The notes beneath the pieces were generated by a model. It ran no database searches. It was given only the letters and a program-made list of their open reading frames with translations, and was not told the origin of the DNA. A stretch of DNA of 64,000 bases from Thecamonas trahens ATCC 50062 (lineage: Eukaryota > Protista > Apusomonadida), in NCBI RefSeq assembly GCF_000142905.1, contig NW_013657626.1, positions 186,001 to 250,000 on the forward strand, given 5' to 3'. Numbering within the stretch: the first letter of the stretch is position 1; the number at the start of each line of letters is the position of its first letter. The translations under genes were made by a program, and so were the position numbers. This document shows, piece after piece, positions 1 through 40,300 of the stretch.

Positions 1-2935
1 CGAGCTTTGTCCGCAATCCGGCAACCGAGAACAGAACACCGGAGCCCTGGCAGTCGAGGGCAACGTGGTTGGCGCCGGCCGCGTCCTGCGGTGGGCCAAC
101 AAGCCGAACGGCGACGCCAGGCCGGATCGGGAGGCCGAGTGGGGCGCAGCCGGTGTAGCGGCCGGGTGGGAGGAGGAGCTCGGTCCAGGTTGCAGACGGC
201 GGGAGCTGAGCAAGCGCAGCAGCGATACAGTCGACGGTGTAGCCGCAGGTGGCCACGTCGACGGCAGCGACAGAGCCGCGGAGAATGGCTGATGAGCCAA
301 AGCGGGTCGAAGCGCGAGCAAGGCCACCTGTCGCGTCGGAAAACACCAGGTCGATGACGCCGTCAGCGTCGGCGTCGACAGGAAAGGCGCTGACTGCTGG
401 GACGCCGGTAAAGTCAACCAACTTTGCGGGCAATGCCAGTTCAAACTTGCCCACGGCGCTGATCTTGCCGAGTGCTACGTTGAAGCCTGTGCCCGAGTTG
501 CCGTCGAGGCCAGTGATGTCGGTGACGCCGTCGCCGTTGGCGTCGACGAGCCGAATCGATGAGCCGAATCGACCTTGGTCTCCGGCCTGGGTGGCAAACA
601 AGCGCGGCTGGGGTGCGGGACCGGCCGAGGCGCCGGGAAGCGGAAGCTCGCATGCCCAGTATTGGTTCTTGGCCGCCTCGACATTGAATATGAGGTTGAC
701 AGCGGACGCCGATGGGGTGCCGTCGGCGCCAAGCGGCGACGAGTTGACCAACAGCAGACCGTGTGTGAGTGCGGTGAGCCGCATGCCGAGCGTCGACGAG
801 GTGTTGCAAAGAAACGGTGTGGCGAGCGCAGTGGCACCATAGGTGGCTTCGCCGTGAACTGCGGGATCGGCGAGGAAGACAAAGAGCGCCGAGGTAGTCA
901 CAAGATCGCCCGAGGTGAAGACAATGTCCATGCGGGAGTCGGCGTTGACATCAAGAACTGTCATGAAATGGTCGTTGGGCTTGAAGCTCGTCGACGGAGT
1001 CGGATAGTCTGCACCAAAGCGGGCGGCAAAGACCGAGTAGTCGCCGGCGTTGTCTTCGTTGCGGATCCAGTAGAGGTATTCGGCGTTGGTGATGATGATA
1101 TCGTAGCCGGCACCGTCACCGACAACGTCGGCAAGCATGATATGCTCGGCGGCAGCGGTGAGGACGCCGGGAAGCGAGGGCGGGACGGTGATGTAGGTCG
1201 GCTGGCGAGCGGCAGCAGGCGTGGCGGCGAGCGCGTCCGCGGCCTTGATGTAGGCAAAGGTAGACGGCGAGCCAGTGAGGGTAAAGACAATGTCGGCCGC
1301 GCCGTCGGCATCAATGGCGCCGACGGCGGTCTTGGCCACATTGGCAGTCCTTTCGAGCTCAAAGGTTGGCGAGGTGAGGATCGAGTCCGGCGTGGCCGCG
1401 GCCCAGCCGGCGACAAAGACGACACGGCCGAGGAAAAACGCCCAGCCGTCAGGGTAGCCGTCACGGTTGACGTCGAGGGGGCCAACAAAGACCGGGTTAC
1501 GGAACTTGTTGAACTCGATAAGGTTGACGGTCGGCGGCTTGTACACCGGAAAGAGGGGAGCCTCGGGAGACGAAACCGGCGGTGCGGTGAGGAGAGCAAT
1601 GTGACTGTAGGAGCTCACGTCGGTGACAAAGATCTCCGGGCCTGCGCCTCTGGCGGCGCCGACGGCAAAGGTGTCAATAACAAACTCTGGCGTGAGTGAC
1701 TGAGCCGTGATCAAGGTAAACTGACGGAGGCCAGCCGAGGCGTCGATGGGACCCGACAGGAGGACGATGACGTTTTTGGCGAGGGCGATGAGGTCCGCAG
1801 CGCCGTTGCCGTCGACGTCTACTGCAGAAAAGGCAGACCAGCCTGTGTTGAGCTTGATGGGCAGCCGAGCAAGGATGGCGCCTTGGCTCTGAGCCACGTA
1901 GCCGTAGGTGTAGTTGATGCCACCCGACTCGATGGGAGTAGCGGCGCGGGCAACGTACACCATGCCGGCGAGCGCGACGCTCTTGGGCGCCGACGTGACA
2001 TAGACAAGGTCGTCGAGGCCATCACCGTTGACGTCAAGCTCAACCGGCGGAAGCTCGGAGGTGCTGATGAGGTTGTCGCGGATGTTGAAGATGTCGGCCT
2101 GAAGTGGTGGATTCGAGCCGTAGATGTCAGCAGGCGCGATGAGCTCGCGAACGGGGTCAAAGGTGAGGCCGGCCCGTCCGGCAGCGACCCACGGCCGGTT
2201 CACGGCTTCGTCCTTGCAGCTGAGGTCTGGAAATGAGTTGTCACCCACAAAGTGACCGATGACAAGCGAGGTGGAGCAGAAGCGGAGGATGTCGTCGTCG
2301 GCGATAAAAGTGTTGAGGGGCGAGAAGGTCTCCCCAAGGCCGTCAAGGTTGAGATAGGCCCCCAGAGTAAGAGGCACACGCTTGAGGAGGGCAATGATAT
2401 CGAGGTCAAGGTCGCCGTCGATGTCGTAGAGCCAGACGCCCAAGATCGCGTCGTCGTTGACGGTAGTAGTGACGTTGCGGTGCTCGGAGCGGATGATGAC
2501 CTTGGAGAAGGCGCCGTCGTTGGTACCAAACACGATCTCGTCGTACCCGTCAACGTCCAGATCACCGACAGCAAGCTGCTGCTGCTCGACTGGAGGCGGC
2601 GGGCCGGAAAGGCCAAACAACGGGCCAGCCTCGATGACAAAGCCCTCGAGGCGTGACGGGCCTGGAGCGTGGCACGAGGCGAACAAGTCGCGGTCGGGTG
2701 CGGACTCGCGAACCCAGACAGCACAATGGTAGGAGGGCGAGAACTGATGGGTTCCACCGATTTTAGCAGCCACCAACGTGCTCCCCGTGTACTGCGAGTT
2801 GACCACGTTGGTCACAATGGGCGTGGCCACGGGTGATGGTGGGGAAGGCGGCGGGCAGTTTGCGGCACGTGCACCGTTGCAAAGCAGAGCGAACAAACAA
2901 ACCGTTTCGACCAGAGCCAGCCTGAGAGTGAAGAG
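1..2935 (-). CDS. Secreted or surface FG-GAP (integrin-alpha-like/VCBS) repeat protein, partial; runs off the window start, start codon near or inside the gap at ~2970
   Basis: Manual minus-strand translation; absent from the ORF track, apparently because no stop lies in the window. Hydrophobic leader LALVETVCLFALLCNGARA, then Ca-binding FG-GAP motifs GDLDVDGYDEIVFG, YDIDGDLDLDIIA, VDANGDGVTDI and VDADADGVIDLVF. Confidence 0.75.
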
Positions 2936-3322
2936 GGGAGGGGGAGGGGTTAGTGTGGCAGAGAAGAANNNNNNNNNNNNNNNNNNNNNNNNNNNNNNNN
3001 NNNNNNNNNNNNNNNNNNNNNNNNNNNNNNNNNNNNNNNNNNNNNNNNNNNNNNNNNNNNNNNNNNNNTTTTACTGGGGGGGGGGGGGGGGGGGAGTGGG
3101 GGGCTTGTGGCTTGTGGGTAGTTGCGGGGAAGGGGGGGAAGGACGCACCTGGAAATGGTCATGGCAGAAGCAGTTTTTCTTTCGGCTGTTGGCGTGGAGT
3201 GTCCGTGTTTTTCTCGGCGGAGAGTGCACTGCCGCTTTCTACCTACCTTCCTTCTCCTCCCTCCTCCGCTCTTCCAGCCAGCGCTCAACTGGGGGCGTGG
3301 CAGGGTCAATCTGACTGTGTTG

Positions 3323-4402
3323 TCAGTGTGTGGTGGAGTGCATCGAGGGCATGGGCGGGGGCGGAGGTGACTCGAGGCGTGGAAGGAGCGAGGCAAAGGC
3401 GTTCAGCCATGCATCCGGGTCCTCGACCATGGCAAAGTGGCCGAGGTCGGGTAGCCAGACAAAGCCAGCTTGGGAAAGGTCAGCCTCGATGGCGGCGCCC
3501 ATGGCGGGCGGTGCGACGGTGTCCCTGGCGCCCCAGATGAAGCCGAGCGGGATGTCGGTGGCGCGGAGCGCGGCCATCCAACGGGATTCGCCGTGCTTGA
3601 ACCGCTGGTCAATGTAGCCGATGAGAGCCGGGAGCCGCCACGCGCCGTCGTGGTACAGCAGGCTCGCCCACATGGCGTCGATGTCAGCCGAGGTGAGGAG
3701 TTCAGACGAGATCGAGCGGATTTGTCGTGAGAAGATGGCGTAGTTGGAGAGCCGCACAAAGGCATCGCCCACGAGCGGGAGCCGCAGCAGAACCTGTGAG
3801 AAGCGGAATGAAGCCATGTCGATCTTCATGCCGCCGTTGTTAAAGACCACAAAGGCGATGTCGAGGCCGACGGCGTGCGGCGCGCCGTCAGCTGCACTCG
3901 CCACCATCTCCTCGCACACGCTGTCGCCCATGTCGTGGCAGACAAGGCCGGCCGAGGTCACGCCGTAGTGTGCAGCGACAGCAAATACCACCTTGGCCTG
4001 ATCAAAGAGCGAGTATGCGTAGTCTGCCGGGAGCGGCTTGTCCGAGAGGCCGTAGCCAGGCAGATCCAGGACGATAACGTTGCGGTCTGCCGAGAGCCGG
4101 CCGGCCACCCCATGCCAATCGTAAGATGACGTGGGGAAGCCATGGACAAGAACAAGCGGGAGACCACACTGTCGACGGCCGATCTTTTGGCACTCGAACA
4201 GGATGGTGAAAACGTCGAGCGTGACTCCGGCGACCGAGATGGGGAGAGACGTCGCCCCAGGTAAGCCCGCCCACTCTTGCAGCGGGAGTGGGAGCATGTC
4301 GACCGACGACGGGAGCGAAGCAAAGGGCGAGGGCGGTGAGAGGAGAGCAGCGAGGATGAGGGCGAGCACTGCGACTGCAGTTGAGGCAGCGAGGGGATGC
4401 AT
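3323..4402 (-). CDS. MEST/PEG1-like alpha/beta hydrolase (epoxide hydrolase family) with N-terminal signal or anchor
   Basis: HGFPTSSYDW, DLPGYGLSDKP, nucleophile elbow CHDMGDS and C-terminal LGHF; ATG at 4402 precedes a hydrophobic segment. Confidence 0.8.
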   Translation of the reverse strand: MHPLAASTAVAVLALILAALLSPPSPFASLPSSVDMLPLPLQEWAGLPGATSLPISVAGVTLDVFTILFECQKIGRRQCGLPLVLVHGFPTSSYDWHGVAGRLSADRNVIVLDLPGYGLSDKPLPADYAYSLFDQAKVVFAVAAHYGVTSAGLVCHDMGDSVCEEMVASAADGAPHAVGLDIAFVVFNNGGMKIDMASFRFSQVLLRLPLVGDAFVRLSNYAIFSRQIRSISSELLTSADIDAMWASLLYHDGAWRLPALIGYIDQRFKHGESRWMAALRATDIPLGFIWGARDTVAPPAMGAAIEADLSQAGFVWLPDLGHFAMVEDPDAWLNAFASLLPRLESPPPPPMPSMHSTTH

Positions 4403-4784
4403 GTGGGTCGTGGGTGGGTGGGCGGGGTGAGGAGAGGTGACGACGGGAGAGGTGAGGGCGGCGATGATCAAGCCAATCCGCGGGGGGAGATGAAGGCGGA
4501 TGATGATGATGATGATGAGGCATTATGATGATGGTAGTCGTCATCCGGCTGCATCCGCCTCCATCTGGATGCGCGTCCCATTCTGACCCACATCCATTTG
4601 CAGGTCATCGCTGCAGCAGTGTTTCGCCGACCTGAACACTTCGCCAAGCGGAGCAACCCGCCTAACTGGCCCCGGACCCGGACGTCAGACAAGACTTGTC
4701 CACACGGCTAGGAGTGTGTGTGTGCGCGCGTGTGTGTCTTTGTCTCTGTCTTTGTCTCTCTACGCAAGGAACACCCGAGTGTGA

Positions 4785-6476
4785 ATGATTTGCTGGAGCT
4801 GGAAGACCGGCTGGTGGGTGGTGGTGGCGGCGGTGGCGTTGGCGGCGTCCGTGGCTTTGGCTCAAGACGATGGCGGCCTCGTTGTGGATGACTTTGAAGC
4901 CGCAGGGGGCTTTGACGACGATTCCGGTGGGATGAATGGACTAGGGATGTGGGCGGATGTTGCTGACTCGGAAGAGTACAACGACGAGCGGATGAGTGAC
5001 GAAGATCACGCACTGTATGAGTATGTGCTCCAGATGGCAAACGAGGCTGAGGCTATGACCGATGACGAGCTGATGGAGCACGATGAGGAGACGGCCGACA
5101 TGTACATTGCGGCGGCGATTTCGGTGGCATCCCAGAAGGAGGATGGTGCAAGCAAGCTGTTTACCATTGCTTTGTTCACTGCATTTGTGGAGGAGGCCGA
5201 CAAGTCCCGTGCCAAGTTGGGCGAGCTTGGCGAGTCCAGTCCGGACGACTGGCTCGATGGGGAGGAGAGCGACGGAAGCGACGAAAGCTACGACGACGGC
5301 GAGGACGACGAGGACGACGAGGACGGGGACATGAAGGACGGCGATGACAACCGTTTTCCCGAGTTCGAGGCCGAGGTGGCAGCAGCGCTGAGCGACGCCG
5401 CGCCGAGGTCGGAGCTGGTGCCGGACGACTGGAAGATCGGGTTCTCATTTGTGCCTGCAGGGCACGATGTTTACGAGTCAACCCATGGCCCGCTCTCGGA
5501 GGCGGTTGCCCTCTGTGCGGCGTTGGACAAGTGCCAGGCGATCACCTTTGAGTTTGATCATGGCGCTGTGACCGAAAAGCTCCTCTCGCGGGCTGCCATC
5601 ATCGCGCTGCGGACGCCGGTCTACCCGGTGAGCACCGAGCTGGTGGACGCACTCGGCGTCACACCTGAGACCGTAGTCCACGCCCACTACAAGGGCGCGG
5701 GATGCACCATCACACCGTACGCAGAGGGCTGGATCACGATGGTGAGCGGGGAGTGGGAGCGGCCAGGCGAGGGCGTGATGGCGGAAGACACCGAGGTGTA
5801 CGCCCACATCTCGGTGGAGCAGGTCTTGCAGGAGCTTGCGGCGTCGGACGAGTTTGAGGCGACGCTGCTGCACTCGGATCCCGCGGTGGTGCTCCTGGAG
5901 GACTTTCTTTCGCCGTCTGAGGTGGCGCACCTGGTGAGCAAGGCTGAAGGCATCGGATTCTCGCGGTCGCTCACGCTCAACTATGACAACCCGAACAAGG
6001 AGCAGGCGTCCGATTATCGGACGTCGGTCACGGCACACTGCGACGAAGATTGCACCGCCGACGAGGTGGTGGCTCGGGTACTGGCGCGGTGCGCACGAGC
6101 GACGCAGACGCATCTCAACAACTCGGAGCCGCTGCAGTTTACAAAGTACGACTTTGAGGGCTCCGAGTTCCGAGTCCACTCGGACTTTATCGAACGCCAC
6201 CTCGAGTCGCCGTGCGGCGGACGGATCTTCACGATCTTCATATACCTGCTCGAGCCCGACGCCGGCGGGCACACCGAGTTCCCGGTCCTCGGCCTCTCGG
6301 TCCCGCCCAAGGCCGGCTCGGCGGTGGTTTGGGCCAACGTGCTGCCGGACGTCGACGCTGAGAACCCGCGGACTCACCACGCCGGCGGGCCGGTTGAGGC
6401 CGGCGTCAAAATGGGCGCCAACCTTTGGATCCACCGTGGCGACTTTCGCCTGGCCTACGAGCTCGGTCTCGGTTAG
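4785..6476 (+). CDS. Prolyl 4-hydroxylase-like 2OG-Fe(II) dioxygenase with signal peptide and acidic N-terminal region
   Basis: DFLSPSEVAHL, RTS, EPLQFTKY, HxD motif (VHSDF), GGHTEFP, PKAGSAVVW, THHAGGPV..GVK..ANLWIH. Confidence 0.85.
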   Translation: MICWSWKTGWWVVVAAVALAASVALAQDDGGLVVDDFEAAGGFDDDSGGMNGLGMWADVADSEEYNDERMSDEDHALYEYVLQMANEAEAMTDDELMEHDEETADMYIAAAISVASQKEDGASKLFTIALFTAFVEEADKSRAKLGELGESSPDDWLDGEESDGSDESYDDGEDDEDDEDGDMKDGDDNRFPEFEAEVAAALSDAAPRSELVPDDWKIGFSFVPAGHDVYESTHGPLSEAVALCAALDKCQAITFEFDHGAVTEKLLSRAAIIALRTPVYPVSTELVDALGVTPETVVHAHYKGAGCTITPYAEGWITMVSGEWERPGEGVMAEDTEVYAHISVEQVLQELAASDEFEATLLHSDPAVVLLEDFLSPSEVAHLVSKAEGIGFSRSLTLNYDNPNKEQASDYRTSVTAHCDEDCTADEVVARVLARCARATQTHLNNSEPLQFTKYDFEGSEFRVHSDFIERHLESPCGGRIFTIFIYLLEPDAGGHTEFPVLGLSVPPKAGSAVVWANVLPDVDAENPRTHHAGGPVEAGVKMGANLWIHRGDFRLAYELGLG

Positions 6477-6478
6477 GC

Positions 6479-7522
6479 CTACGACTGCAGCTTGAGCTCG
6501 CCTAGCGCGAGCACGCGCGCAAACTCGTTCTCGGTAAACGACAGTGCCTTGGCGGCTTCGATATGCAGCTTCTGGCGCTTGAGTAGATCGATGAGCTTAA
6601 CCTGCTTCTTAAAGGCAGCCAGGAGCTCGGTGCGCTGCTTGGAGAGCCGCTTGATGGACGCGTCGCGGTCGGCGAGCTCGCGGCGGAACTTGGCGGCGTC
6701 GTCGCGGGCGGCAGCCTGCGCCTCTGCCAGCTCCGCCTTGACCTTTTCCGCCTCTTCTAGCGCCCGATTGAGCCGGACGTCGGCCGATGTGGCCTTGCTC
6801 GCCCGTGCCCGCGAGTCGGCCACCGTCTTGTCGAGCTCGGACTGCAGCGAGCTGGCCTTGAGCGCGTGGGCGTGGGCCTTGCGACGCGCCTCCTCTGCCA
6901 CCTTTTGCGCCTTTGTCGCCGCAGTCTTGAGCGCCTGCTCGGCACGAGCGGCGCGGCGGTTCTCGTCGAGCGCAGTCTTGAGTTCGGCTTCGGATTCGGC
7001 GAGCATGCGATCCTTGTCGGCCGACTCGGCCATGACGCTCTCCAGCCGCTGCTGCATCGCCTGCAGCTCACGGGTGAGGACCGAGACCTGGGCCATGGCA
7101 GCCGCGGCCGAGCCGGGCGAGCTCCCGCTGCTGGTCCGCGGGTGCGGCGACCCGCTGCTCTGCGGCGGCGACATGGCCAGCGAGTGCCTCATCGACGCAA
7201 GGGTCGACGACGCCGGTGATCCAGGCGTGGCAGTGGCAAACACGGCGCCGGTAGTCGGCCGAGCCGCCGTCCGCAGCGGCGTCCGACCCCGAGGCGGAGT
7301 AGCAGGCACAGTAAGCACAGGCTGCTCCGGTGCCGCCTCCGGTGCCGCCATCGGAGCCTCGGGCTGGGGCAGCGGCTCCAAAGCCGGACCGGCCATCCGC
7401 TGAAAGTACGCCTCCTGCTCCTGCAGCACCTGCGCCGCATGGCTCTCGGCCCTGCTCTTGCGGGCGTCGAGTTGTTCATTCAGCTGCCGCAGCTTGCGCT
7501 CCCTCTCCAGAAGCCTGTCCAT
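6479..7522 (-). CDS. TEX9: TEX9-like coiled-coil protein (ciliary or centriolar)
   Basis: C-terminus KQRTELLAAFKKQVKLIDLLKRQKLHIEAAKALSFTENEF matches the conserved TEX9 tail; ATG at 7522. Confidence 0.8.
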   Translation of the reverse strand: MDRLLERERKLRQLNEQLDARKSRAESHAAQVLQEQEAYFQRMAGPALEPLPQPEAPMAAPEAAPEQPVLTVPATPPRGRTPLRTAARPTTGAVFATATPGSPASSTLASMRHSLAMSPPQSSGSPHPRTSSGSSPGSAAAAMAQVSVLTRELQAMQQRLESVMAESADKDRMLAESEAELKTALDENRRAARAEQALKTAATKAQKVAEEARRKAHAHALKASSLQSELDKTVADSRARASKATSADVRLNRALEEAEKVKAELAEAQAAARDDAAKFRRELADRDASIKRLSKQRTELLAAFKKQVKLIDLLKRQKLHIEAAKALSFTENEFARVLALGELKLQS

Positions 7523-14847: not shown

Positions 14848-17800
14848 TCATGGCTTGGATGACTTGGCCTTGGTTCGCGCCCACTTTGGCACCCGCGATC
14901 GCTTGCAGGTCGAGGCTGCAGCGTGCATACCGTCGACACGGCGTGGGAAGGCGTGCAGCGTCTCGATCCACGACTGGACGGTGGTGAAGATCTGGGCCTG
15001 CGACGGGAGTTTGGCGGTGAGCGGCGCGGACGGTGAGCGTGCGTACCCGATAAAAACCGAGCGCGAGGCGTCGGCGCTGGCGTCGGCCGGCGGCGCGAGA
15101 AGATCCTTGGACGGTGCCACATGGAGGTCGAGCGCCTCGAGGTCGGCCACCAGTGCAGGCATGCGCGAGAGCGCCCATCCGGTCCACTCCGCCAGATCGG
15201 CGTCGGAGAGCGCAAAGAGCTCGAGCTGGACGTACGCAGGGTATTGGGCAGTGTGATGGCTCCGCGCAAAGAGATCAAGCCAGCTCGCTTGGCCGGAGCC
15301 GAGCCCGGCAACGAGGTTAGCAGCGCGGACAAACTCGGCCTTGAGGAGCCGCAGCGTCGACGGCGTCACGTTGCGTGCCGTGTTTTCGGGCGGGTAGCAC
15401 GGCGAGAGGACCGGCATCCGGTGGTACTTGGCCTTGGACTTGGTCCACGGATGGATGCCTGCGTTGGCGGCGTGCTTTGGAATGTCTCCGGGAGGAATGA
15501 GCGCAATCGGCTCTGGGTACTCCCAGCAGGCGTAGGTGGCGAAGAAAGCAGCAAGCAGCTCCTCCACGCTCGCACCAGGGAAACGTCGGCAGACTTTGGC
15601 CACCATCAGCGCCCACGAGAGGCCGCCGAGGAGGCAGACCGACGAGCCCGAGAGCCCGCGGTTCTTCTGCCACCGCTTGACCGCACGAAGAGTGGCCTTG
15701 AACACCTCCACGTCCGGAACCAGTGACACAAGCTTGCCAGCCTCGCGCGGGCCGCGAATCGACGCCACAGACGCAAAATCGTCCTTGATAGCATTGAGCA
15801 CCTTCTTCGTCTCGACCTCGGCATAGGCCGGGTCCAGCGCGTCGAGTGGGACGTCGTCAAACCCGGTTGTGCTCGTTGGGAGCTTGGACTTGAGCGGAAC
15901 GCTGGCATACGCGAGATCAACCTCGATGCCGTCGATCACTGCCTTGTAGACTGGCACAAACGCGTCGCGGACTTCACGGAGAAACGAGGTTCCTGGGTAC
16001 GCCTCGAGAAGCTGCCGAAGGCTTCCGTCAAAAAACGCGTCGTGGCCGAGGCCGGCTGGGCCTACTGCCACCACATCGATGTCTGAGCTCGGAGTGAGAA
16101 CGCCAAGGACAAGCGAGCCATACGGCAGCAGTCGCCAGGTGTGTCCCGGCCCCGCGTCAACTCCCGCGCCGGTCATCCACGAGTCGACAAGTGCATTGAG
16201 CACCATCAAAACTGCGTGGTGCGAGTCTGTCGCAGTAGGCGCGGTGATCCGTGGATCCAGCCGAGGAAGAAGAGTCGGCGGCGCGAGGTCTGGAGCTGCG
16301 ACCTCCGCCGGTGGCGCGGTAGCATCGGGCGCAGTGCTGGCGTCCAGCCCGAGGCGCGCGTCGGCCAGGCGGACACCTGGTGCGAGCGCGGCGAGTGGAC
16401 CCAGGCGCGGGGTGTCTGGCAAGAGCGTGTGCTTGAGAAAGACAACAGCCTCGCGGACAGCAGCTCTGCCGGGCACTGCACCATTGACCCGAAAAGTCGA
16501 TCGGTGGCCAGAGCCGAGGGCGTCGCGGAGTGTGGCGTCAAAGCCTACGTCCCGAACTGCAAGATAGATCCGGTACAAGAGGCAGCCCTCCAGGACGTCG
16601 GCGAGTGCGGCTGGGACCGGCGCGCCGAGCGCGACGTTGTAAAGATACAGCGCCTGGGTCACCGACATGACGGTCGAAGTCAGCTGGAGCGCAGCCGGCA
16701 CGTACCGATCGCCGCCTTTGCCACGGGTCTTGCCCTTGCCCTTGCCCTTGCCACAGGTCTGGCTCGCGCTGGCGTCACTCGCAGACGCACGCGTGACCTT
16801 GGACCCGTAGTAGGCAGCCTTCTGAATCATCCGCGAGGTGGCAATCGAGCGGACCTTGCGGCAGAGTGGGTGGCTCGGAGCAAGCAGAGGAAGAAGCACC
16901 ATCGAGAGCGCGACGGCGTCCCACTCGGTATGCGAGAGCTCCAGCCCCGGGAGCGTGGCCAGGCAGCGCAGAATGGCGGCGCCAAACTTGGGAACCAGGT
17001 GAGTGGGTGAGGCCGCGTCGACCGAGGCTGTCGACGCGTCGCCAGCGTGGAGATCCTCGTCGAGGTCCAAGCCCGGGTCTGAGCCCGAGCTCGAGCCTGA
17101 GGAGGCGCCGACCGGCGGGAAGGCGCGGCGTGACGGAACGGTTCCGTCGCTGGCGGTCGGCGTCATGGACGCCGGCAGCGGACGCGGTGAGGCCCGCAGA
17201 TCGTTGGTGAGAATGAGGTTGTAGTCGCGCGGAAGGAGCGGCGCGGCACCGGGCGCCTGGTCCGGGAACATGGCGAGCGCGTCCCACGAGCGAGTTGCCG
17301 GATCAAAGCCAGCAAGCAGGTAAAACGCGTCAGCACGGGCGTGTGGGCCGAGCGCGGCGTACGCCGCCGCGCGGGCTTGTGGCGACTTGAGGATGTGGTG
17401 TGGGACTGCGGTGCGAGCTTCGATGAGTGCAGCGCGGGCGGCCGAAGAGCCGGCTGGTGTCAGTGCCGGTGGCTCGGCCAGCAGCGCGGACGCGACGCTT
17501 GGATTGACGCCCACCTCAAATTCGCCAGCAGAGCTGGGGCTCTTCTTGCGGGCCTCGGTGACGGTGGCGAGCGGAGCGGAGGCGTCAAAGGCTGGCGCAG
17601 CAGGGTCGACCAGCATCAGCTCGTAGACGGCAAGCCGGAGCGGGGCGCAGCGAGCATGGAGCGACGACGAGCCAAGCTCAATGAGCGGATGGCACTTGAG
17701 CCGGTGCCAAAGCACAATCTCGTACAGCGAGAGGCCCGGCTCGTTGTGAAAGGCCGGAAGCAGGTGGCGTGGAACGGCAGACGGGGTGGCGGCGATGGCA

Positions 17801-18939
17801 GCAGCATGTGGCATGACATACTGGTTGCGGGCTGCGACATAAGTTGCGAGCCGGGCGGCGAGTGCATCGGGCGCTGCATCCGGGAAGAGCGCTGCGGCAA
17901 ACTCTGGCGCTGAGACGTCGAGCAGGCCGGGCAGGGTGTTGCCGTTGGCGGCATCGCCGACGACAGTGTCGACAAGCTTGGGCAGGGTGTTGGAGGCAAG
18001 GAAGAGAGCGACGGCAAGGACCGAGTCGCGGCGGGTAAAGCCGTAGCGCTCAACGAGCGAGCCGACAAAGTGGAGGGTCTCTGACGAGTTGAGAATGTCG
18101 TTGCCCATCATGCACGCGAGGTCCGGTAGGTGGTGGGCAGCAAAGGTGCCCGGTGCAGCGGCGCGGGAGGCAAGCATGCCGTTGATGCGGTCAACCGTGT
18201 CCTGAGGAGTGTATCGCTGGGCCGTAATGGTCATGCCGGAGAGCGAAACGTCCATCGACGAGTACGAGATGACACCGTTGAGGTTGGGCACCGCGAGGTA
18301 GTCGGTGTCGCCGCCAAGCACGGCATACGCGCCGCGGACGATGGCGAGGGCGGTAACCAAATCGTCGGCCTCCTTGTTCTGAGCGTGGTGGATCTCGATC
18401 GACGCCGGCGGCGCCTCACCGCGGGCGAGCACGTTGCGGACAGCCTCGACAAAGGCATAGTGCATAAGCGGCGGTGGGCGGACTTGATAGAAGCTATCGG
18501 GATCGCCCGACTGCATAAAGTCGGAGACGGCAGTGATGCGGCGGTCCCAGCGGTCGACAAGAGTCCCGCGGCGCTCCTTCTCAGTCTCGGGGCAGCCCTC
18601 CATGACCAGCACCAGATCCATGCGCGAAGCCAGCGCCGCCAGCAGAGCCTCAGCCCGGGCCACATACACCCGGTACTGCCCGCCGGCCAGCCAGTCGATT
18701 CGCGGCTTGCGCTCGTAGATAAAGAACATCAGGCCCGAGGCATCGACCACGACCAGCGGGCGTGTCCGGCTCTGGCTCGCGGCATCGTCGTGGTCCGAGG
18801 CTGCAGTGTCCGAGGCGGCGGCCAGCGGAGTGCCTGGCTCGGCAGAGAGGCTCACCCGATTGCCCCAGAAGCTCCAGTCTTTCTCTACATCCGAGTGTGC
18901 GGTGTTGGTGATAAACGAAGCCAGGCCGCGGATGCCCAT
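14848..18939 (-). CDS. Asteroid/FAM120-like PIN (XPG-type) nuclease fused to a canonical poly(A) polymerase, about 1363 aa
   Basis: N-terminal MGIRGL, VVDASGL, GGQY, EADD, GDTDY and MGND motifs. C-terminal YGSLVLGV..SSDIDV, DAFVPV, GIEVDLAYA, LRAVKRW, LGGLSWALMVAKVC, MPVLSPCYP..N..RNVTPST and the PAP RNA-binding domain. No stop or gap between the two halves. Confidence 0.85.
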   Translation of the reverse strand: MGIRGLASFITNTAHSDVEKDWSFWGNRVSLSAEPGTPLAAASDTAASDHDDAASQSRTRPLVVVDASGLMFFIYERKPRIDWLAGGQYRVYVARAEALLAALASRMDLVLVMEGCPETEKERRGTLVDRWDRRITAVSDFMQSGDPDSFYQVRPPPLMHYAFVEAVRNVLARGEAPPASIEIHHAQNKEADDLVTALAIVRGAYAVLGGDTDYLAVPNLNGVISYSSMDVSLSGMTITAQRYTPQDTVDRINGMLASRAAAPGTFAAHHLPDLACMMGNDILNSSETLHFVGSLVERYGFTRRDSVLAVALFLASNTLPKLVDTVVGDAANGNTLPGLLDVSAPEFAAALFPDAAPDALAARLATYVAARNQYVMPHAAAIAATPSAVPRHLLPAFHNEPGLSLYEIVLWHRLKCHPLIELGSSSLHARCAPLRLAVYELMLVDPAAPAFDASAPLATVTEARKKSPSSAGEFEVGVNPSVASALLAEPPALTPAGSSAARAALIEARTAVPHHILKSPQARAAAYAALGPHARADAFYLLAGFDPATRSWDALAMFPDQAPGAAPLLPRDYNLILTNDLRASPRPLPASMTPTASDGTVPSRRAFPPVGASSGSSSGSDPGLDLDEDLHAGDASTASVDAASPTHLVPKFGAAILRCLATLPGLELSHTEWDAVALSMVLLPLLAPSHPLCRKVRSIATSRMIQKAAYYGSKVTRASASDASASQTCGKGKGKGKTRGKGGDRYVPAALQLTSTVMSVTQALYLYNVALGAPVPAALADVLEGCLLYRIYLAVRDVGFDATLRDALGSGHRSTFRVNGAVPGRAAVREAVVFLKHTLLPDTPRLGPLAALAPGVRLADARLGLDASTAPDATAPPAEVAAPDLAPPTLLPRLDPRITAPTATDSHHAVLMVLNALVDSWMTGAGVDAGPGHTWRLLPYGSLVLGVLTPSSDIDVVAVGPAGLGHDAFFDGSLRQLLEAYPGTSFLREVRDAFVPVYKAVIDGIEVDLAYASVPLKSKLPTSTTGFDDVPLDALDPAYAEVETKKVLNAIKDDFASVASIRGPREAGKLVSLVPDVEVFKATLRAVKRWQKNRGLSGSSVCLLGGLSWALMVAKVCRRFPGASVEELLAAFFATYACWEYPEPIALIPPGDIPKHAANAGIHPWTKSKAKYHRMPVLSPCYPPENTARNVTPSTLRLLKAEFVRAANLVAGLGSGQASWLDLFARSHHTAQYPAYVQLELFALSDADLAEWTGWALSRMPALVADLEALDLHVAPSKDLLAPPADASADASRSVFIGYARSPSAPLTAKLPSQAQIFTTVQSWIETLHAFPRRVDGMHAAASTCKRSRVPKWARTKAKSSKP

Positions 18940-20415
18940 GGTGGTTAGCGCTAGCGGCGGTGAAGTGGGTTGGTTTGGCGAGGGAGGACGGCGTGGGCCA
19001 CGAACGGGGAAAGTCGTAGGTTTTTGATCGAGTGGGAATGGAAGACGAGTTGAATGGAAGGCATTGGAGGTTGGNNNNNNNNNNNNNNNNNNNNNNNNNN
19101 NNNNNNNNNNNNNNNNNNNNNNNNNNNNNNNNNNNNNNNNNNNNNNNNNNNNNNNNNNNNNNNNNNNNNNNNNNNNNNNNNNNNNNNNNNNNNNNNNNNN
19201 NNNNNNNNNNNNNNNNNNNNNNNNNNNNNNNNNNNNNNNNNNNNNNNNNNNNNNNNNNNNNNNNNNNNNNNNNNNNNNNNNNNNNNNNNNNNNNNNNNNN
19301 NNNNNNNNNNNNNNNNNNNNNNNNNNNNNNNNNNNNNNNNNNNNNNNNNNNNNNNNNNNNNNNNNNNNNNNNNNNNNNNNNNNNNCGGACCGGGGGGGGA
19401 GGGGGAGGGGGGGAGGTGAGGACTGTGCACGCTGATGTTGGCTGTGGATTGATGGGTGGGCGTAGTGTGGGTCTGGGGCTGGGACATCAAACCAAACCAA
19501 TGGAACAGAGAAACCACCAGATGCTGGTTGCGTCCAAACGACCGCAGTGTTAAGGGTTGCCGCGACGGCTACGAGTCGCTAACACTCGCGACCGGCTGAG
19601 CGAAGCAAAGCGGCTGACACCTTACTTCGCTATGAGCTCCGATGGCGTCGACACAGTCGGCTCCGATGGAGCGGGAACCCACACGCCCACCCGTTCTGAT
19701 GACGATGCGCGACGACGAGGACGACGGGCGCCCACTGGGTGCCCAATTCTTACCTTGATCTCGTGTGTACGCGAGCAAGCGACGGGCACTCATGTACACG
19801 TGAGTCCCGTGCCAATTGGCACGATGTAGAGGCAAAGATGGTCAGCACAGTAAATACGAGGAGATCTCAAGCCGTCGAGCCAGCGAAGCGGTCACTCGGC
19901 CGGCGACCGACAGTGTTGAGAGTCCCGGTCGGTGATCCGGTGTATTGCTGTGACGGTTCGGCAGACTTGACTTGCTCCGACTTGCACTCATGCGGATCAA
20001 CCTCACAGGTATGTTACAGGTTGCAGCATCCACGACAGCATGCAGAACCATATGTCTACCAGCTTATATAGTGGCGGCCGCGGTCAATTTGGTTGTCATG
20101 GGTGACTGGTGGGCCTGTGGCGGGCTGTGGACCTGTGTGACGACCTAAAGAAAGTGTCGGACCGCTTTTGCGGCGGGGCTCCAGCCTGCCTTGTCGGCAT
20201 TGGGCAGGGCTCTACAACCAGACAACATCCCACACCAGGACACAACCACGCCGGCACACGTCGAGTTGAAAGCACATACTCCTGTCGTGGTCGTTCAAGA
20301 CGACGCCGACGCAGCAAGTATACACTTCGGGTGAGGACACAGTGGCGAGGTGTTTTTTTCGCGGGGAGGGAACACAAAGCGCGGGTCGCACACGAACCGC
20401 ACACATCATACTTAC

Positions 20416-22931
20416 ATGCATCGCTTCTTTTCGCAGTGTTTTCCTGCCTTGTTACCCTTGCGGCCGTGTGCTTGTGCTCAGGTGCTGCGGCCCGTGAGCT
20501 CCAGGCGCGCGGGTGGCGGCAGCGGTTCGATGCCGAGCAAGTGGTGAGTGCGGCGTCTGCGGGCGCTGAGTGCGTCATCCTTGCAGACATCGACGGCGAC
20601 GGTGATCTTGACATGGTCGTTGCAGCGGCGGGCGACAACACGGTTGCCTGGTTTGCCAACACCGACGGCGGCGGGACGTACGGACCGGCGCAGATTGTGA
20701 CCACCACGGCCAGTGGGGTGCAGATGGTTGTTGCCGAGGACATCGACGGTGACGGCGATCTTGATTTGGCGGTCGCTTCGAACGGCGACCACACTCTCGC
20801 GTGGTTCGCCAACACCAACGGCAGCGGCGACTTTGGCCCAGCGCAGATTGTGACGAGCACGGCTAGCGGTGCATCTGTGGTCGCTGCCGCTGACATGGAC
20901 GGTGACGGCGATGTGGACCTCATCGTGGGTGCCCTCGACGAAGGCGCTGCATCATGGTTTCCCAACACCGACGGCGCGGGCACCTTTGGCTTGGGCAACG
21001 TCATTGCCACGTCTGTTAACCTCCCGCGCACGGTCACCCCAGTAGACATTGATGATGACGGCGACATCGACATTGTCATTGGCTCGGGCTCGACGTTTTC
21101 CGCCAAGGCGCTCTCCTGGTACTCCAACGATGGGACCGGGAGCTTCAGCTCGGCCAGGACAGTCCGGTCGGTATCGGCGACGCCGACGGCTGTCACAGCT
21201 GCCGACATCGACGGCGACGGCGACTGGGACCTTGCCGTCGGCCTTGTCGAGACCGGCGAAACGGTGTGGTACCGTAACCTTGACGGCGCCGGTGCCTTTG
21301 CCGCCGCTCGCACCATTTCCACCACTGCTAACTATGTCACCGACATTGTGGCGGTTGACATGGACGGTGACGGCGACCTTGACATTGCGACGGCGTCGAA
21401 GAACGACAACACGGTGGCGTGGCGCGAGAACACCGACGGTTTCGGTAGCTTTGGCCCGGAGATACTGGTGACGGCGAGCGCAAGCGGGGCGGCGTCAGTG
21501 GCGGCGGGAGACATCGATGGGAACGGTGCGATCGACTTTGCGGTCGCATCGGCGACGGCTAACACTGTTGGCTGGTTCCGGAACGCCATGTACTGGCACA
21601 TGTATGCCCGCACCCCCGTTGTGGTGACATCGGCTGCGCCTGGCGCTGCATCGGTTGCTGCAGGAGACTTTAACGGTGACGGCGCCGTCGACCTCGCCTC
21701 GATCTCGTCCAACGACCGCAAGGTGGCGTGGTACGCTGGCGATGGCAGCGGCAGCTTCGGCGCTCAGACAGTGATCGACACCAACGGCGGCGGCGCAGAG
21801 CAGGTCATCGCCGTAGACGTCGATGGCGACGGCGACTCGGATGTGGTTGCCATCTCGACCGGCGGCGGGTACGCCCGGTGGTACGCCAACACCGACAGCG
21901 CTGGCACCTTTGGCCCGGCGCTGGACATTGCCACCACTGACGTGCCATACGGCGCGGCAGTCGCAGATCTGGACGGCGATGCTGATGTTGACCTCGCCAT
22001 CGTCTTCCGTGGTCATCTGGCGTGGTTGGCAAACACCGACGGCGCCGGGAACTTTGGAACGGCGGTCACAATCTCGACTTTTCTGCTTAGCGGGAGCGCG
22101 GTCATCGCCGCCGACATCGACGGCGACGGCGACAGCGACCTTGTGACGACCTCGCAGCTCGACCGCAAGGTTGCGTGGTACGAGAACACCAACGGTGCTG
22201 GCGCCTTTGGTGTGCAGAACGTGATCACGTCTTCCGCCTACGGCGCGTGCTCGGTCGTGGCGGCAGACATCGACGGTGACGGTGATCTTGACCTGGCCTC
22301 GACCTCGCAGTTTGACGACAAGGTGGCGTGGTACGACAATACTGACGGCGCCGGAGCTTTCGGTCCGCTCACGCTCATCAGCTCCTTGGCCTCGGCGCCC
22401 GTCGCGGTCGTCGCCCTCGATGCCGACAGTGACGGTGACGTCGACCTCGCGGTCGTGTCGGCCATCGACAACTACGTCCGGCTCTTCCAGAACAACGGCG
22501 ATGGCAGCTCGTTTGCCATCGTCCCCATCACCTCAGCAGCCAGCGAGCCAGAGGGCTTGGCGGCGGTCGACATCGACGCGGACGGCGACTCGGATCTGGT
22601 TGTCGCCAACTCGGGTGCCACCACCGTCACATACTTTGCCAACATCGGGCCGGCTCCGCCACCGTCGCCGCCGTCGCCACCAGCTGGGCCAGGAGGCAAC
22701 GCGACAGCCAGCGCAGCCGGCACGGTGCGCGGCTCGTCATCGGCCAGCGATGACGACACGATGCTGATCATTGGGGCGTCGGCCGGGGCGGCAGTGGTTG
22801 CATGCTGTCTAGCCGCCGTGGTGGCGGTAGTTGTCGTCCGCCGGCGGCGCGGAGGCCAAAAGGCGGACGGTGGCGAGGTAGGGAGCGAACTCGGGCGCGG
22901 AGGAAGCGAGGTGGCGCTCAGCCAGATCTGA
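20416..22931 (+). CDS. Type I membrane protein with 14 FG-GAP repeats (two 7-bladed propellers); apparent -1 frameshift at 20428-20431
   Basis: 14 D-x-D/N-G-D-G-D-x-D-type motifs in two groups of seven, a Pro-rich stalk, TM segment LIIGASAGAAVVACCLAAVVAVVVV and RRRR stop-transfer. ATG 20416 plus one T gives signal peptide MHRFFFAVFSCLVTLAAVCLCSGAAA. Confidence 0.85.
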
Positions 22932-37354: not shown

Positions 37355-40300
37355 CTAGGCATCGTCGGCAACGGTGATGACGTCGCTGATGCGCTCCGAA
37401 GCAAGCCACTCACGAAGGACAGCGGTTTCGCGGAAGCGGCGCTTGACGAGGGTGCGAATGTCGACACCTGCAGCTTCCCACTTGGCCTTGGCGGCGGCGA
37501 CGGGGTCGTCGACAGCCTCCTCATCCTCGAGGTCCTCGACGATGGCGCGGACCATGCCTGCGATGAGCTTGCCGACGTGGCCGCCGAGGATGAGCATCTC
37601 GCGCGGGGCGAGGAGCTCGACAATCTGCGAGATGGTCATGAGGTCAGCGGCGATTAGGCGGCCGACGAGGCGGCCGACGTAGAGGCCGCCGAGCGGGATG
37701 TCGATGAGCAAGTCATCGAGGAGGTCCAGGCAGGCCGCCAGACCCTCGACCACGAGATCGGCGGTGATGTCGACGACCGAGCCAGAGACGAGGGCGATGA
37801 ACAGGTCGGGCAGCGACTCGCGGGCGTCCTCCTTCTTCTCGAGCATGATGGTGAGCGACTGCGAGATGAACTTGGGGTAGTACTCGGGCGCGTTGAGCTC
37901 GGCGAGGCACTCGGCCACCTCCTTGGTGTCACGAAGCGAAAAGTACTCCTCAAGAATCGACTTGCCGCGGCGGGCGAGCTTCTCAGGCGAGAGCTTGGCC
38001 GGCTCGGCGGGCGCGGGCTCGGCGGCGGTCGTCGGTGCGGGCGCGGGCTCGGCCTGGGCAGACGAGCGAGACTGGGCAGCAGCACCGCCCGGGCGGCGTG
38101 ACGCCGGCGAGTTGCCGCGCGACGACGACGGCGAGCCCGAGTTGCCGCGCGAGCACGGGCCGGCGACGAGCGAGGGCGGGGCANNNNNNNNNNNNNNNNN
38201 NNNNNNNNNNNNNNNNNNNNNNNNNNNNNNNNNNNNNNNNNNNNNNNNNNNNNNNNNNNNNNNNNNNNNNNNNNNNNNNNNNNNNNNNNNNNNNNNNNNN
38301 NNNNNNNNNNNNNNNNNNNNNNNNNNNNNNNNNNNNNNNNNNNNNNNNNNNNNNNNNNNNNNNNNNNNNNNNNNNNNNNNNNNNNNNNNNNNNNNNNNNN
38401 NNNNNNNNNNNNNNNNNNNNNNNNNNNNNNNNNNNNNNNNNNNNNNNNNNNNNNNNNNNNNNNNNNNNNNNNNNNNNNNNNNNNNNNNNNNNNNNNNNNN
38501 NNNNNNNNNNNNNNNNNNNNNNNNNNNNNNNNNNNNNNNNNNNNNNNNNNNNNNNNNNNNNNNNNNNNNNNNNNNNNNNNNNNNNNNNNNNNNNNNNNNN
38601 NNNNNNNNNNNNNNNNNNNNNNNNNNNNNNNNNNNNNNNNNNNNNNNNNNNNNNNNNNNNNNNNNNNNNNNNNNNNNNNNNNNNNNNNNNNNNNNNNNNN
38701 NNNNNNNNNNNNNNNNNNNNNNNNNNNNNNNNNNNNNNNNNNNNNNNNNNNNNNNNNNNNNNNNNNNNNNNNNNNNNNNNNNNNNNNNNNNNNNNNNNNN
38801 NNNNNNNNNNNNNNNNNNNNNNNNNNNNNNNNNNNNNNNNNNNNNNNNNNNNNNNNNNNNNNNNNNNNNNNNNNNNNNNNNNNNNNNNNNNNNNNNNNNN
38901 NNNNNNNNNNNNNNNNNNNNNNNNNNNNNNNNNNNNNNNNNNNNNNNNNNNNNNNNNNNNNNNNNNNNNNNNNNNNNNNNNNNNNNNNNNNNNNNNNNNN
39001 NNGACCACCGGACCGGCGTCCGCCAGACCCGCCGCGGCCGCCGTGCTGGCGCGCAGACGCGAGCTCGCCGGCGCCAAAGACCGGCTTGGTGATCCGCGCC
39101 AGCGAAAAGCCTGGCGGCGGCCGCGTGTCGAGCGGGAAGCTGCTAGTGTCGATGAGATCCGGCCGGACAGCCTTGGAGAACTGCATCTTGATGAGCGCGT
39201 CGATCGGGTACTTGATGCGTCCGCGCTTGGTCGTCCGCGTGTCGGCAGTCGGCCGCGCGGTCGCCACCGACCGTTCGGCCATCTTGCGCGAGAGCGCCTC
39301 CTCACGGCGACGCTGCCGCTCGGCCTCATCGTCGTCGAGGAGCGCCGAGTGGACTGCGGGCTTGACCGGCGTGGCGGCCGACTTGGCCGCCGCCACAGAG
39401 CGGGACGGCGGGATGAGCGGCTGGTGCGGCTTGGACGGCGCGGCGGTGCGGGCGCGAGAATCGGCACGGGCCTTGGCCTCGGCAGCAGCGCGAGACTTGG
39501 CCTCGGCAGCCGCGCGGGCCTTGGCCTCGGCAGCCGCGCGGGCCTTGGCTTCGGCAGCAGCGCGGGCCTTGGCCTCGGCGGCGGCCCTGGCCTTGGCTTG
39601 GGCCTCGGCTTGGGCCTCGGCGCGGGCCGCCTCGGCGACGCGGCGCTCGTGCTCGGCCTGGACCTTATCGACTGCGGTGATGAGAGCCATGTCGGCGGTG
39701 CGCTTGGCCCAACGCTCAGTAGTGGCCTGGGCACATAGCTGGGCCACCGTCGGCTGGGCGGGATCGAGCGGAGCCGACGCCGGCGCACCAACATACAGCA
39801 GCTGACCGAGGGCGGCGACTGGACGGAGGAACTGCAGCCGCTGAATAGCATGCGGGGTGCAGTGGTCGAGGAGCGGCGCCACAAAGGTGTTGTCGGAGAT
39901 CTTGACCTTGGACCGTGTGCGCGGCGGACGCATCCACGACCAGCCGCGGACGCGCTGCTCACAGACCTGGCCGATGCGCCAGTTGACCTTGGCGTCGAAG
40001 AGCTGCGCCCGCTGCGCAAGCTTGAGGCCGACAAAGACGTGTTCGGCAAGCGCGTGCGCAGCCTCGTCGGCGTCGGGCGCGTCGAGCTTGGCGCCTACCG
40101 TAAGGAAGAGCTGGCAGGCGGCCACCATGTCGCACGTCTGGCGGTCGGTCATCACCGTTTTGCTCTCGGCGAGCGCGGCGGCACGGGCAGCGGCGTCGGG
40201 CGCAAAGTACAGCGAGAGGTCGGCAAAGATCGATGAGAGAATGGCGAGCGAGAGGACGCTGACGTTAAAGAGCTCGCCGACCAGCGCAAGCAGGCCCACA

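Follow-up and report, generated by a model that had tools for sequence, protein, structure and literature searches.

The stretch of DNA analysed here, referred to as the window, comprises 64,000 nucleotides of Thecamonas trahens ATCC 50062 (NCBI RefSeq assembly GCF_000142905.1, contig NW_013657626.1, positions 186,001 to 250,000 of the forward strand), an intron-poor eukaryote with a genome of 28.7 Mb and a GC content of approximately 62%. On the minus strand, positions 14848-18939 of the window carry a gene whose product joins a predicted nuclease domain of the Asteroid/FAM120 branch to a predicted canonical-type poly(A) polymerase (PAP). The gene is a real single gene, and we are highly confident that the fusion architecture of its product is genuine. 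Each of the two enzyme families is familiar, and the literature searched contains no description of the two joined in one chain.

Results

The gene consists of one open reading frame (ORF) of 1363 codons plus stop (14848-18939, minus strand), which contains no stops, gaps, N or X and lies exactly where an initial annotation of this DNA had claimed a stop-free and gap-free ORF of 1363 aa; each motif listed in that annotation occurs once, at the position it gave. The reading frame extends open 5' of the ATG at 18939 and through a run of N (19075-19385). The start was placed at this ATG on the basis of the sequence MGIRGL with which the protein then begins, as this is the hallmark start of the FEN family and an N-terminus common to the family and to both orthologues described below. 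The run of N is an assembly gap, which lies 135 nt upstream of the ATG and outside the gene, and hides the promoter and 5' untranslated region. The GC content at third codon positions (GC3) ranges from 0.65 to 0.81 per 100-codon block across the ORF, the block with the linker included, and the 1363-codon ORF contains neither TGTAA nor GTAAA, candidate poly(A) motifs for this genome, nor AATAAA.

Residues 1-416 (17692-18939, minus strand) are predicted to fold as a nuclease of the FEN/EXO1 type, with a PIN-like core, a helical arch and an H2TH/H3TH region as in EXO1 and FEN1. The AlphaFold2 (AF2) model of this part is of moderate quality (pLDDT 70.5); a Foldseek search with the model returned EXO1 (7.8e-7), and VIA-align placed residues 2-416 of the model on residues 2-336 of human EXO1 (3qea) with a Z of 17.9 and an rmsd of 4.0 over 285 residues. 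A profile built from the family of the N-terminal half (N-half) matched human EXO1 among the PDB sequences (4.8e-8), and also FEN1, Rad2/XPG and GEN1. This family profile was needed, as a single-sequence phmmer search of the N-half against the PDB sequences gave only chance matches to Rad50 with E about 1; a Pfam search of the nuclease half returned no match. The profile also places the acidic motifs of the N-half on the active-site motifs VDT, FDG, EAD, DSD and GCD of EXO1. The seven putative active-site acidic residues obtained from this alignment (18097-18744, minus strand) are D66, E114, E190, D192, D211, D213 and D281, in the motifs VVVD66, VME114G, E190-A-D192-D, GD211-T-D213 and GND281, and we take their EXO1 counterparts to be D30, D78, E150, D152, D171, D173 and D225. 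The three fusion orthologues retain an acidic residue at each of the seven positions; in a wider alignment of the relatives of the N-half, D211, D213 and D281 do not vary.

To relate the nuclease half to other proteins, 1.84 billion representative proteins were searched exhaustively by phmmer with residues 1-860 as the query; only nine were retrieved: three fragments of orthologues of the fusion and six distant relatives (P0004-P0009). Five of these six relatives carry XPG_N, XPG_I or XPG_I_2 domains or the NCBI name FAM120-like, P0005 and P0006 being the ones that match Pfam XPG_I_2; the sixth, P0009, has a Pfam match to PMG only, starts with MGIKGL and possesses an Asteroid-like C-terminal motif. 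The ESM features of the N-half have their neighbours in the FAM120A, Asteroid_N (PF27698) and XPG_I_2 clusters (0.96-0.90), the top ones being FAM120A. In a tree with the genome's two ordinary XPG_N/XPG_I nucleases (C33 and C14) as the outgroup, the N-domains of the three fusions form one clade (100/100) nested in an Asteroid/FAM120-like group, and this group, fusions included, splits from the XPG/EXO1-type nucleases of the genome with 100/100; the order within the group is not fixed by the tree. At E up to 1, the window protein matches neither Pfam XPG_I_2 (PF12813) nor MKT1_N or MKT1_C. Since the XPG_I_2 cut-off is not reached, the N-half is best described as a divergent relative of the Asteroid/FAM120 class and not as a member of the Pfam family. 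The modelled fold, the profile, the ESM features and the tree support the assignment of residues 1-416 as a predicted PIN/FEN-fold nuclease domain of the Asteroid/FAM120 branch with a complete acidic set. The PIN fold with intact acidic motifs put forward in the initial annotation is upheld by the structural match to EXO1 and the seven conserved positions.

The remainder of the N-half consists of a middle region and a module that closes it. The middle region (residues 417-745; 16705-17691, minus strand) is rich in Ala, Pro and Ser, includes conserved blocks (56% identity to the TARA orthologue over residues 1-717) and ends in a (GK)4 repeat; residues 441-880 gave no feature match in the Atlas. 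The closing module (residues 746-850; 16390-16704, minus strand; ALQLTS...YLYNVALGAP...LEGCLLYRIY), with the motifs YLYNVALGAP at residues 765-774 and LEGCLLY at residues 783-789, is kept in the three orthologues. It is followed by an Ala/Pro-rich linker (residues 851-897; 16249-16389, minus strand; composition A25 P18 L15), which differs in both length and sequence among the three orthologues and keeps the frame in all of them. Two Asteroid-like proteins, P0004 and P0009, carry an N..LG.P...[DE]G motif at their C-terminus, with which the closing module aligns in the same register by MAFFT and by hhalign; the hhalign alignment, which pairs residues 743-803 of the window protein with the final 60 columns of an Asteroid-like template, is not significant (E 0.17, probability 0.4%). 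The earlier claim that the first ~800 residues constitute a full Asteroid/FAM120-like protein thus holds for residues 1-416, is plausible beyond residue 416, and is not carried to significance by the C-terminal segment. A basic spacer of variable length stands before the closing module, as (GK)4 at 16729-16752 in the window and as (KGS)n at 2390-2570 of the TARA scaffold L003.

The C-terminal half opens with the PAP nucleotidyltransferase domain (residues 904-1036; 15832-16230, minus strand), which matches Pfam PAP_NTPase (PF20750) with 46.6 bits against a cut-off of 27 bits. The PAP central domain (residues 1079-1225; 15265-15705, minus strand) matches PAP_central (PF04928) with 115.5 bits against a cut-off of 27.1 (E 2.3e-33). 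Solved PAPs match over ~360 residues with values from 4.9e-50 to 3e-41, human PAP gamma being at the top (4lt6, 4.9e-50) and bovine PAP alpha, yeast Pap1 and S. pombe Pla1 being among the others. G941-S942, D953, D955 and D1008 align to GS...DID...IEID of PAP gamma (4lt6), which holds its three catalytic Asp together with the Gly-Ser. The first part of this motif (G941-S942...D953-I-D955) lies at 16075-16119, exactly where the initial annotation had placed it, and the third Asp, likewise reported there as intact, is found in IEVD1008. All three PAP domains had been claimed there, and two of them, PAP_NTPase and PAP_central, are recognised by Pfam. The third is less clear: the PAP RNA-binding domain (PF04926) has no Pfam match in the window protein, the orthologue P0003 reaches 19.1 bits with the same model, below the 24-bit cut-off, and the alignments to solved PAPs end about chain residue 415-437. 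On the strength of the alignments to PAP gamma and PAP alpha up to that point, residues 1226-1345 (14905-15264, minus strand) are a probable, divergent RNA-binding domain. The protein ends in a basic tail (residues 1346-1363; 14851-14904, minus strand), KRSRVPKWARTKAKSSKP, which is kept as KRSKLPVWLRKKKRRR in the TARA orthologue and is a possible nuclear localisation signal. The domain matches and the aligned catalytic residues support the prediction that the C-terminal half (residues ~900-1363) is a divergent, catalytically complete PAP of the canonical type.

The same colinear order of nuclease and PAP is found in three independent assemblies, with the frame kept across a linker of varying length. 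On the TARA Oceans scaffold L003, one frame matches residues 1-717 at 56% identity and another matches residues 744-1359 at 58%; the change of frame falls in a run of N within the (KGS)n repeat, and the junction of the N-half with the PAP is contiguous on the scaffold. An intron or a frameshift in the TARA orthologue was considered and rejected, as the frame changes in a scaffold gap of arbitrary length. The Logan contig protein P0001 (883 aa), truncated where the contig stops, shows 46% identity starting at residue 1 and runs into the PAP catalytic motif (YGSMRLGV...SDIDVV), where hmmscan recognises the start of PAP_NTPase at residues 812-876; its precomputed Pfam matches include FAM120A (PF27242). 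The doubt raised earlier, that the gene might be a chimera of the assembly, is not borne out, as the TARA scaffold and the Logan contig carry the same architecture. The gene beside the TARA copy (L003 4527-7226, minus strand) is 60% identical to an eIF4G-like gene of the window (37367-39348), which lies ~20 kb away, and the scaffold therefore comes from a related organism. The neighbourhood of the fusion is loosely conserved and rearranged between the scaffold and the window.

The fusion is known from one lineage, comprising this genome and a few environmental sequences. Scans of JGI metagenomes with the alignment of the N-half and with that of the PAP half found no relative, and the exact 1363-aa sequence is absent from a collection of 15 billion proteins. 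Word-based searches with the whole protein, and with the PAP part against long proteins, found no other fusion, their sensitivity being limited by low-complexity words that swamped the candidates; a search of the same kind, likewise of limited sensitivity, with the PAP part of P0003 found ordinary PAPs only, at 29-33% identity. The literature search found no published description of a fusion between an Asteroid-type nuclease and a PAP, which agrees with the statement of the initial annotation that it knew of none. We regard the nuclease-PAP fusion as rare and undescribed; given the limited sensitivity of the database searches, we make no claim that it is unique.

The genome also encodes an ordinary PAP, an ORF of 596 aa on C30 with 163.8 bits to PAP_central, and a CPSF73 gene on C67. 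The separate housekeeping PAP for which the initial annotation had called is therefore present, and the fusion is an additional enzyme and not the housekeeping PAP. The 31% identity between the ordinary PAP and the PAP half of the fusion fits the earlier description of that half as divergent. A search of the genome for Fip1 gave a weak negative, obtained without a positive control.

No close paralogue of the N-half was found in the genome. A stand-alone Asteroid-like gene is present (C34:274816-278640; L010 694-2325, minus strand; 544 aa), which the family profile matches with E 1.4e-25. Its protein shows the motifs MGIRGLH..., VDGEG, FVDG, QDSDF and GNDY and a C-terminal LLVDG, and reads SDA at the EAD position. 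A second fusion, which the family profile also detects (C10:540500-549500; L014, ORF 1091-7384, minus strand), has 2097 aa and combines an Asteroid/FAM120-like N-terminal module with a DEAH RNA helicase in its middle part, for which the best solved match is Spindle-E (2.8e-83). The N-terminal module of this protein, with the motifs MGIRGLW..., LLVDG, GEAD and DTDF, is very divergent, as reflected in BLASTP E values of 0.004-0.008 and a long branch in the tree.

Six-frame searches of the 28.7-Mb genome gave no match for a Piwi domain (Argonaute) or for RNA-dependent RNA polymerase (RdRP), the RdRP search being without a positive control. A coupling of the fusion to silencing by Argonaute and RdRP is thus less likely; within the limits of these searches, the small-RNA route is the part of the anti-transposon role suggested in the initial annotation that is weakened. 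The Spindle-E-like helicase is present in the genome although no Piwi or RdRP match was seen.

Discussion

In its C-terminal half, the fusion resembles the canonical PAPs (PAP alpha and gamma, Pap1, Pla1) in having the NTPase and central domains above the Pfam cut-offs and the Gly-Ser with three Asp. It differs from them in that its PAP is preceded by ~900 residues instead of beginning its own polypeptide, in ~18 residues inserted between its catalytic domain and its central domain, in an RNA-binding domain too divergent for Pfam, in a Ser in place of the Tyr of the 'GIYSN' motif, and in a tail that is short and basic where the canonical C-terminus is long and regulatory. To our knowledge, the canonical PAPs of the eukaryotes studied so far are stand-alone proteins that obtain their specificity from partner complexes. 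In its N-half, the fusion shares with the Asteroid/FAM120/Mkt1 class the MG(I/V)xGL start, the predicted FEN-like fold, and the motifs VVD, V(F/M)(D/E)G, EAD, DxD and GND, together with a long C-terminal half that may correspond, and members of this class are its sole distant relatives among the 1.84 billion proteins searched. In contrast to that class, it does not reach XPG_I_2, has Glu as the second acidic residue and is fused to a PAP, which has been reported for no member in the literature searched.

Systems in which two proteins cut and then tail RNA are well established, for instance CPSF73 with PAP at mRNA 3' ends, RDE-8 with RDE-3/MUT-2 in nematode silencing, and TRAMP with the exosome. 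The fusion would resemble them functionally, by analogy only, in pairing a nuclease or decay machine with a template-independent nucleotidyltransferase. However, these pairs are separate chains, with nucleases of the metallo-beta-lactamase or NYN type and non-canonical polymerases of the Trf4/Cid type, whereas the fusion is one chain with a FEN-like nuclease. The second fusion of the genome has the same kind of N-terminal module, with a Spindle-E-type helicase as its partner instead of a polymerase.

In the explanation that we favour, with a confidence that falls a little short of even, the protein would select its own RNA targets and tail their 3' ends by a cut-and-tail mechanism. The predicted product consists of an N-terminal nuclease with a complete, putatively metal-binding acidic set, a long and poorly ordered middle with a conserved end module, and a canonical-type PAP, and would work beside the ordinary machinery of CPSF and PAP without replacing it. 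On its own, a canonical PAP binds RNA only weakly; it requires an RNA 3'-OH and normally borrows its specificity from CPSF/Fip1. In the proposed mechanism, the N-half would supply the recognition of the substrate, probably a structured RNA. Hydrolysis by FEN-family enzymes leaves a 3'-OH and a 5'-phosphate; the N-half would probably make an endonucleolytic cut in the RNA that leaves a 3'-OH, and the tethered PAP half would extend this new 3'-OH with adenosines. From the sequence, we infer that RNA would be the substrate, that the nuclease would be active, that cutting would be coupled to tailing and that the gene would be expressed as one protein; the tail might either stabilise the RNA or mark it for decay. 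As the structures of FEN1 and EXO1 indicate, enzymes of the FEN family have their free N-terminus at the active site, which fits the order of the domains, with the nuclease first and the PAP last. The fusion of the same type of N-module to a Spindle-E-like RNA helicase in the same genome supports this proposal. Previous work is consistent with parts of this proposal: the Asteroid family has been assigned to the FEN-like proteins, with conservation of six or seven acidic residues (PMC5499597, Matelska 2017), FAM120A is an RNA-binding protein found together with Ago2 (PMC6800481), and Mkt1 works with Pbp1, a partner of the poly(A)-binding protein Pab1 (PMC12345631).

Several points weigh against the cut-and-tail mechanism. 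At the second acidic position, the three fusions have Glu (E114 in the window protein), and the other relatives have Asp. The AF2 model of the middle (residues 441-880) is unusable, with a pLDDT of 36.8 across ~450 residues. Within the PAP half, the 'RGIYSN' stretch conserved in canonical PAPs carries Ser in place of its Tyr, both in the window protein ('RGLSGSS'; 15640-15690, residues 1084-1100) and in the TARA orthologue ('MLSGST'); this Tyr is presumably an ATP contact in bovine PAP, and the Ser may bring an altered activity or choice of nucleotide. No RNA cleavage is known for FAM120A or Mkt1, and the N-half may accordingly be restricted to binding. A separate PAP made from an internal start, itself very improbable, would count in the same direction. 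Finally, human ASTE1 is reported, in work cited in PMC12345631, to act as a nuclease on DNA in the repair of double-strand breaks, and the substrate of the fusion could accordingly be DNA.

The absence of a known cleavage activity in FAM120A and Mkt1 leads to a serious, if on balance doubtful, alternative, namely targeted polyadenylation without cutting. Here, the N-half would be an RNA-binding or scaffold module similar to FAM120A or Mkt1 that brings the PAP to chosen transcripts; existing 3' ends could, for example, be lengthened again and the mRNAs thereby stabilised or activated. The literature on the two proteins is consistent with this alternative, as FAM120A is described as RNA-binding and associated with Ago2 with no reported nuclease role (PMC6800481), and Mkt1, for which a common class with ASTE1 and FAM120 has been proposed, takes part with Pbp1 in post-transcriptional regulation (PMC12345631, Caballero 2025). 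The precomputed FAM120A match of the orthologue P0001 and the FAM120A clusters among the top ESM features point the same way. The retention of the acidic residues argues against it: all seven positions are kept in the three fusions, and D211, D213 and D281 are invariant more widely. In pure binding modules, the acidic residues of the nuclease usually drift.

The report on ASTE1 bears on a further alternative, which we hold to be improbable: that the protein processes DNA ends, with the N-half trimming overhangs or flaps of broken DNA and the nucleotidyltransferase half adding ribonucleotides to DNA or RNA-DNA ends in the course of repair. ASTE1 has been reported as a structure-specific DNA nuclease that acts with shieldin (in work cited in PMC12345631), and the nearest solved folds to the N-half, EXO1, FEN1, XPG and GEN1, are DNA nucleases. 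However, the polymerase half belongs with the RNA-specific canonical PAPs, and not with Pol X/TdT or Pol mu, and the other fusion partner of the N-module in this genome is an RNA helicase. It is well established that canonical PAPs extend RNA primers.

That the two halves do not form one protein at all, through an artefact of assembly or annotation or through two products from an internal start of transcription or translation (the separate PAP considered above), is highly improbable: the exact sequence is missing from the 15-billion-protein collection and the assembly gap lies 135 nt upstream of the ATG, but three independent assemblies hold the same order in a continuous frame despite the variation of the linker, GC3 is uniform through the linker, and the ORF is devoid of TGTAA, GTAAA and AATAAA.

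If the cut-and-tail mechanism is true, a natural single-chain nuclease-PAP would represent a minimal and different way of coupling the cleavage or recognition of RNA to its tailing, and could serve as a compact tool for targeted RNA tailing. It would also tie a poorly understood class of nucleases to the tailing of RNA 3' ends. The role of the Asteroid/FAM120/Mkt1 class is unsettled, its members being seen as DNA repair nucleases, RNA binders or regulators of translation. Gene fusions often mark a functional partnership, and the occurrence of the module in fusion with both a PAP and a Spindle-E-like helicase in one genome suggests that the class acts on RNA, and on its ends in particular. A bolder proposal, which we regard as rather unlikely, is that this single polypeptide forms RNA 3' ends without CPSF, its FEN-type nuclease cutting a structured RNA and passing the new 3'-OH straight to the PAP tethered to it, and that the fusion is a 'Rosetta stone', indicating that the Asteroid/FAM120/Mkt1 class as a whole works at the 3' ends of RNA and at their poly(A) tails.

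Additional features

Two further nucleases of the genome, at C33:4000-10500 (L008 2155-4449) and on C14 (L005 334-2496), gave weak matches to XPG_I_2. They were rejected as paralogues of the N-half, being ordinary XPG_N/XPG_I nucleases of the EXO1/GEN1/XPG type. In the window itself, the run of N at 19075-19385 masks the divergent intergenic region between the fusion gene and an FG-GAP gene at 20109-22931.

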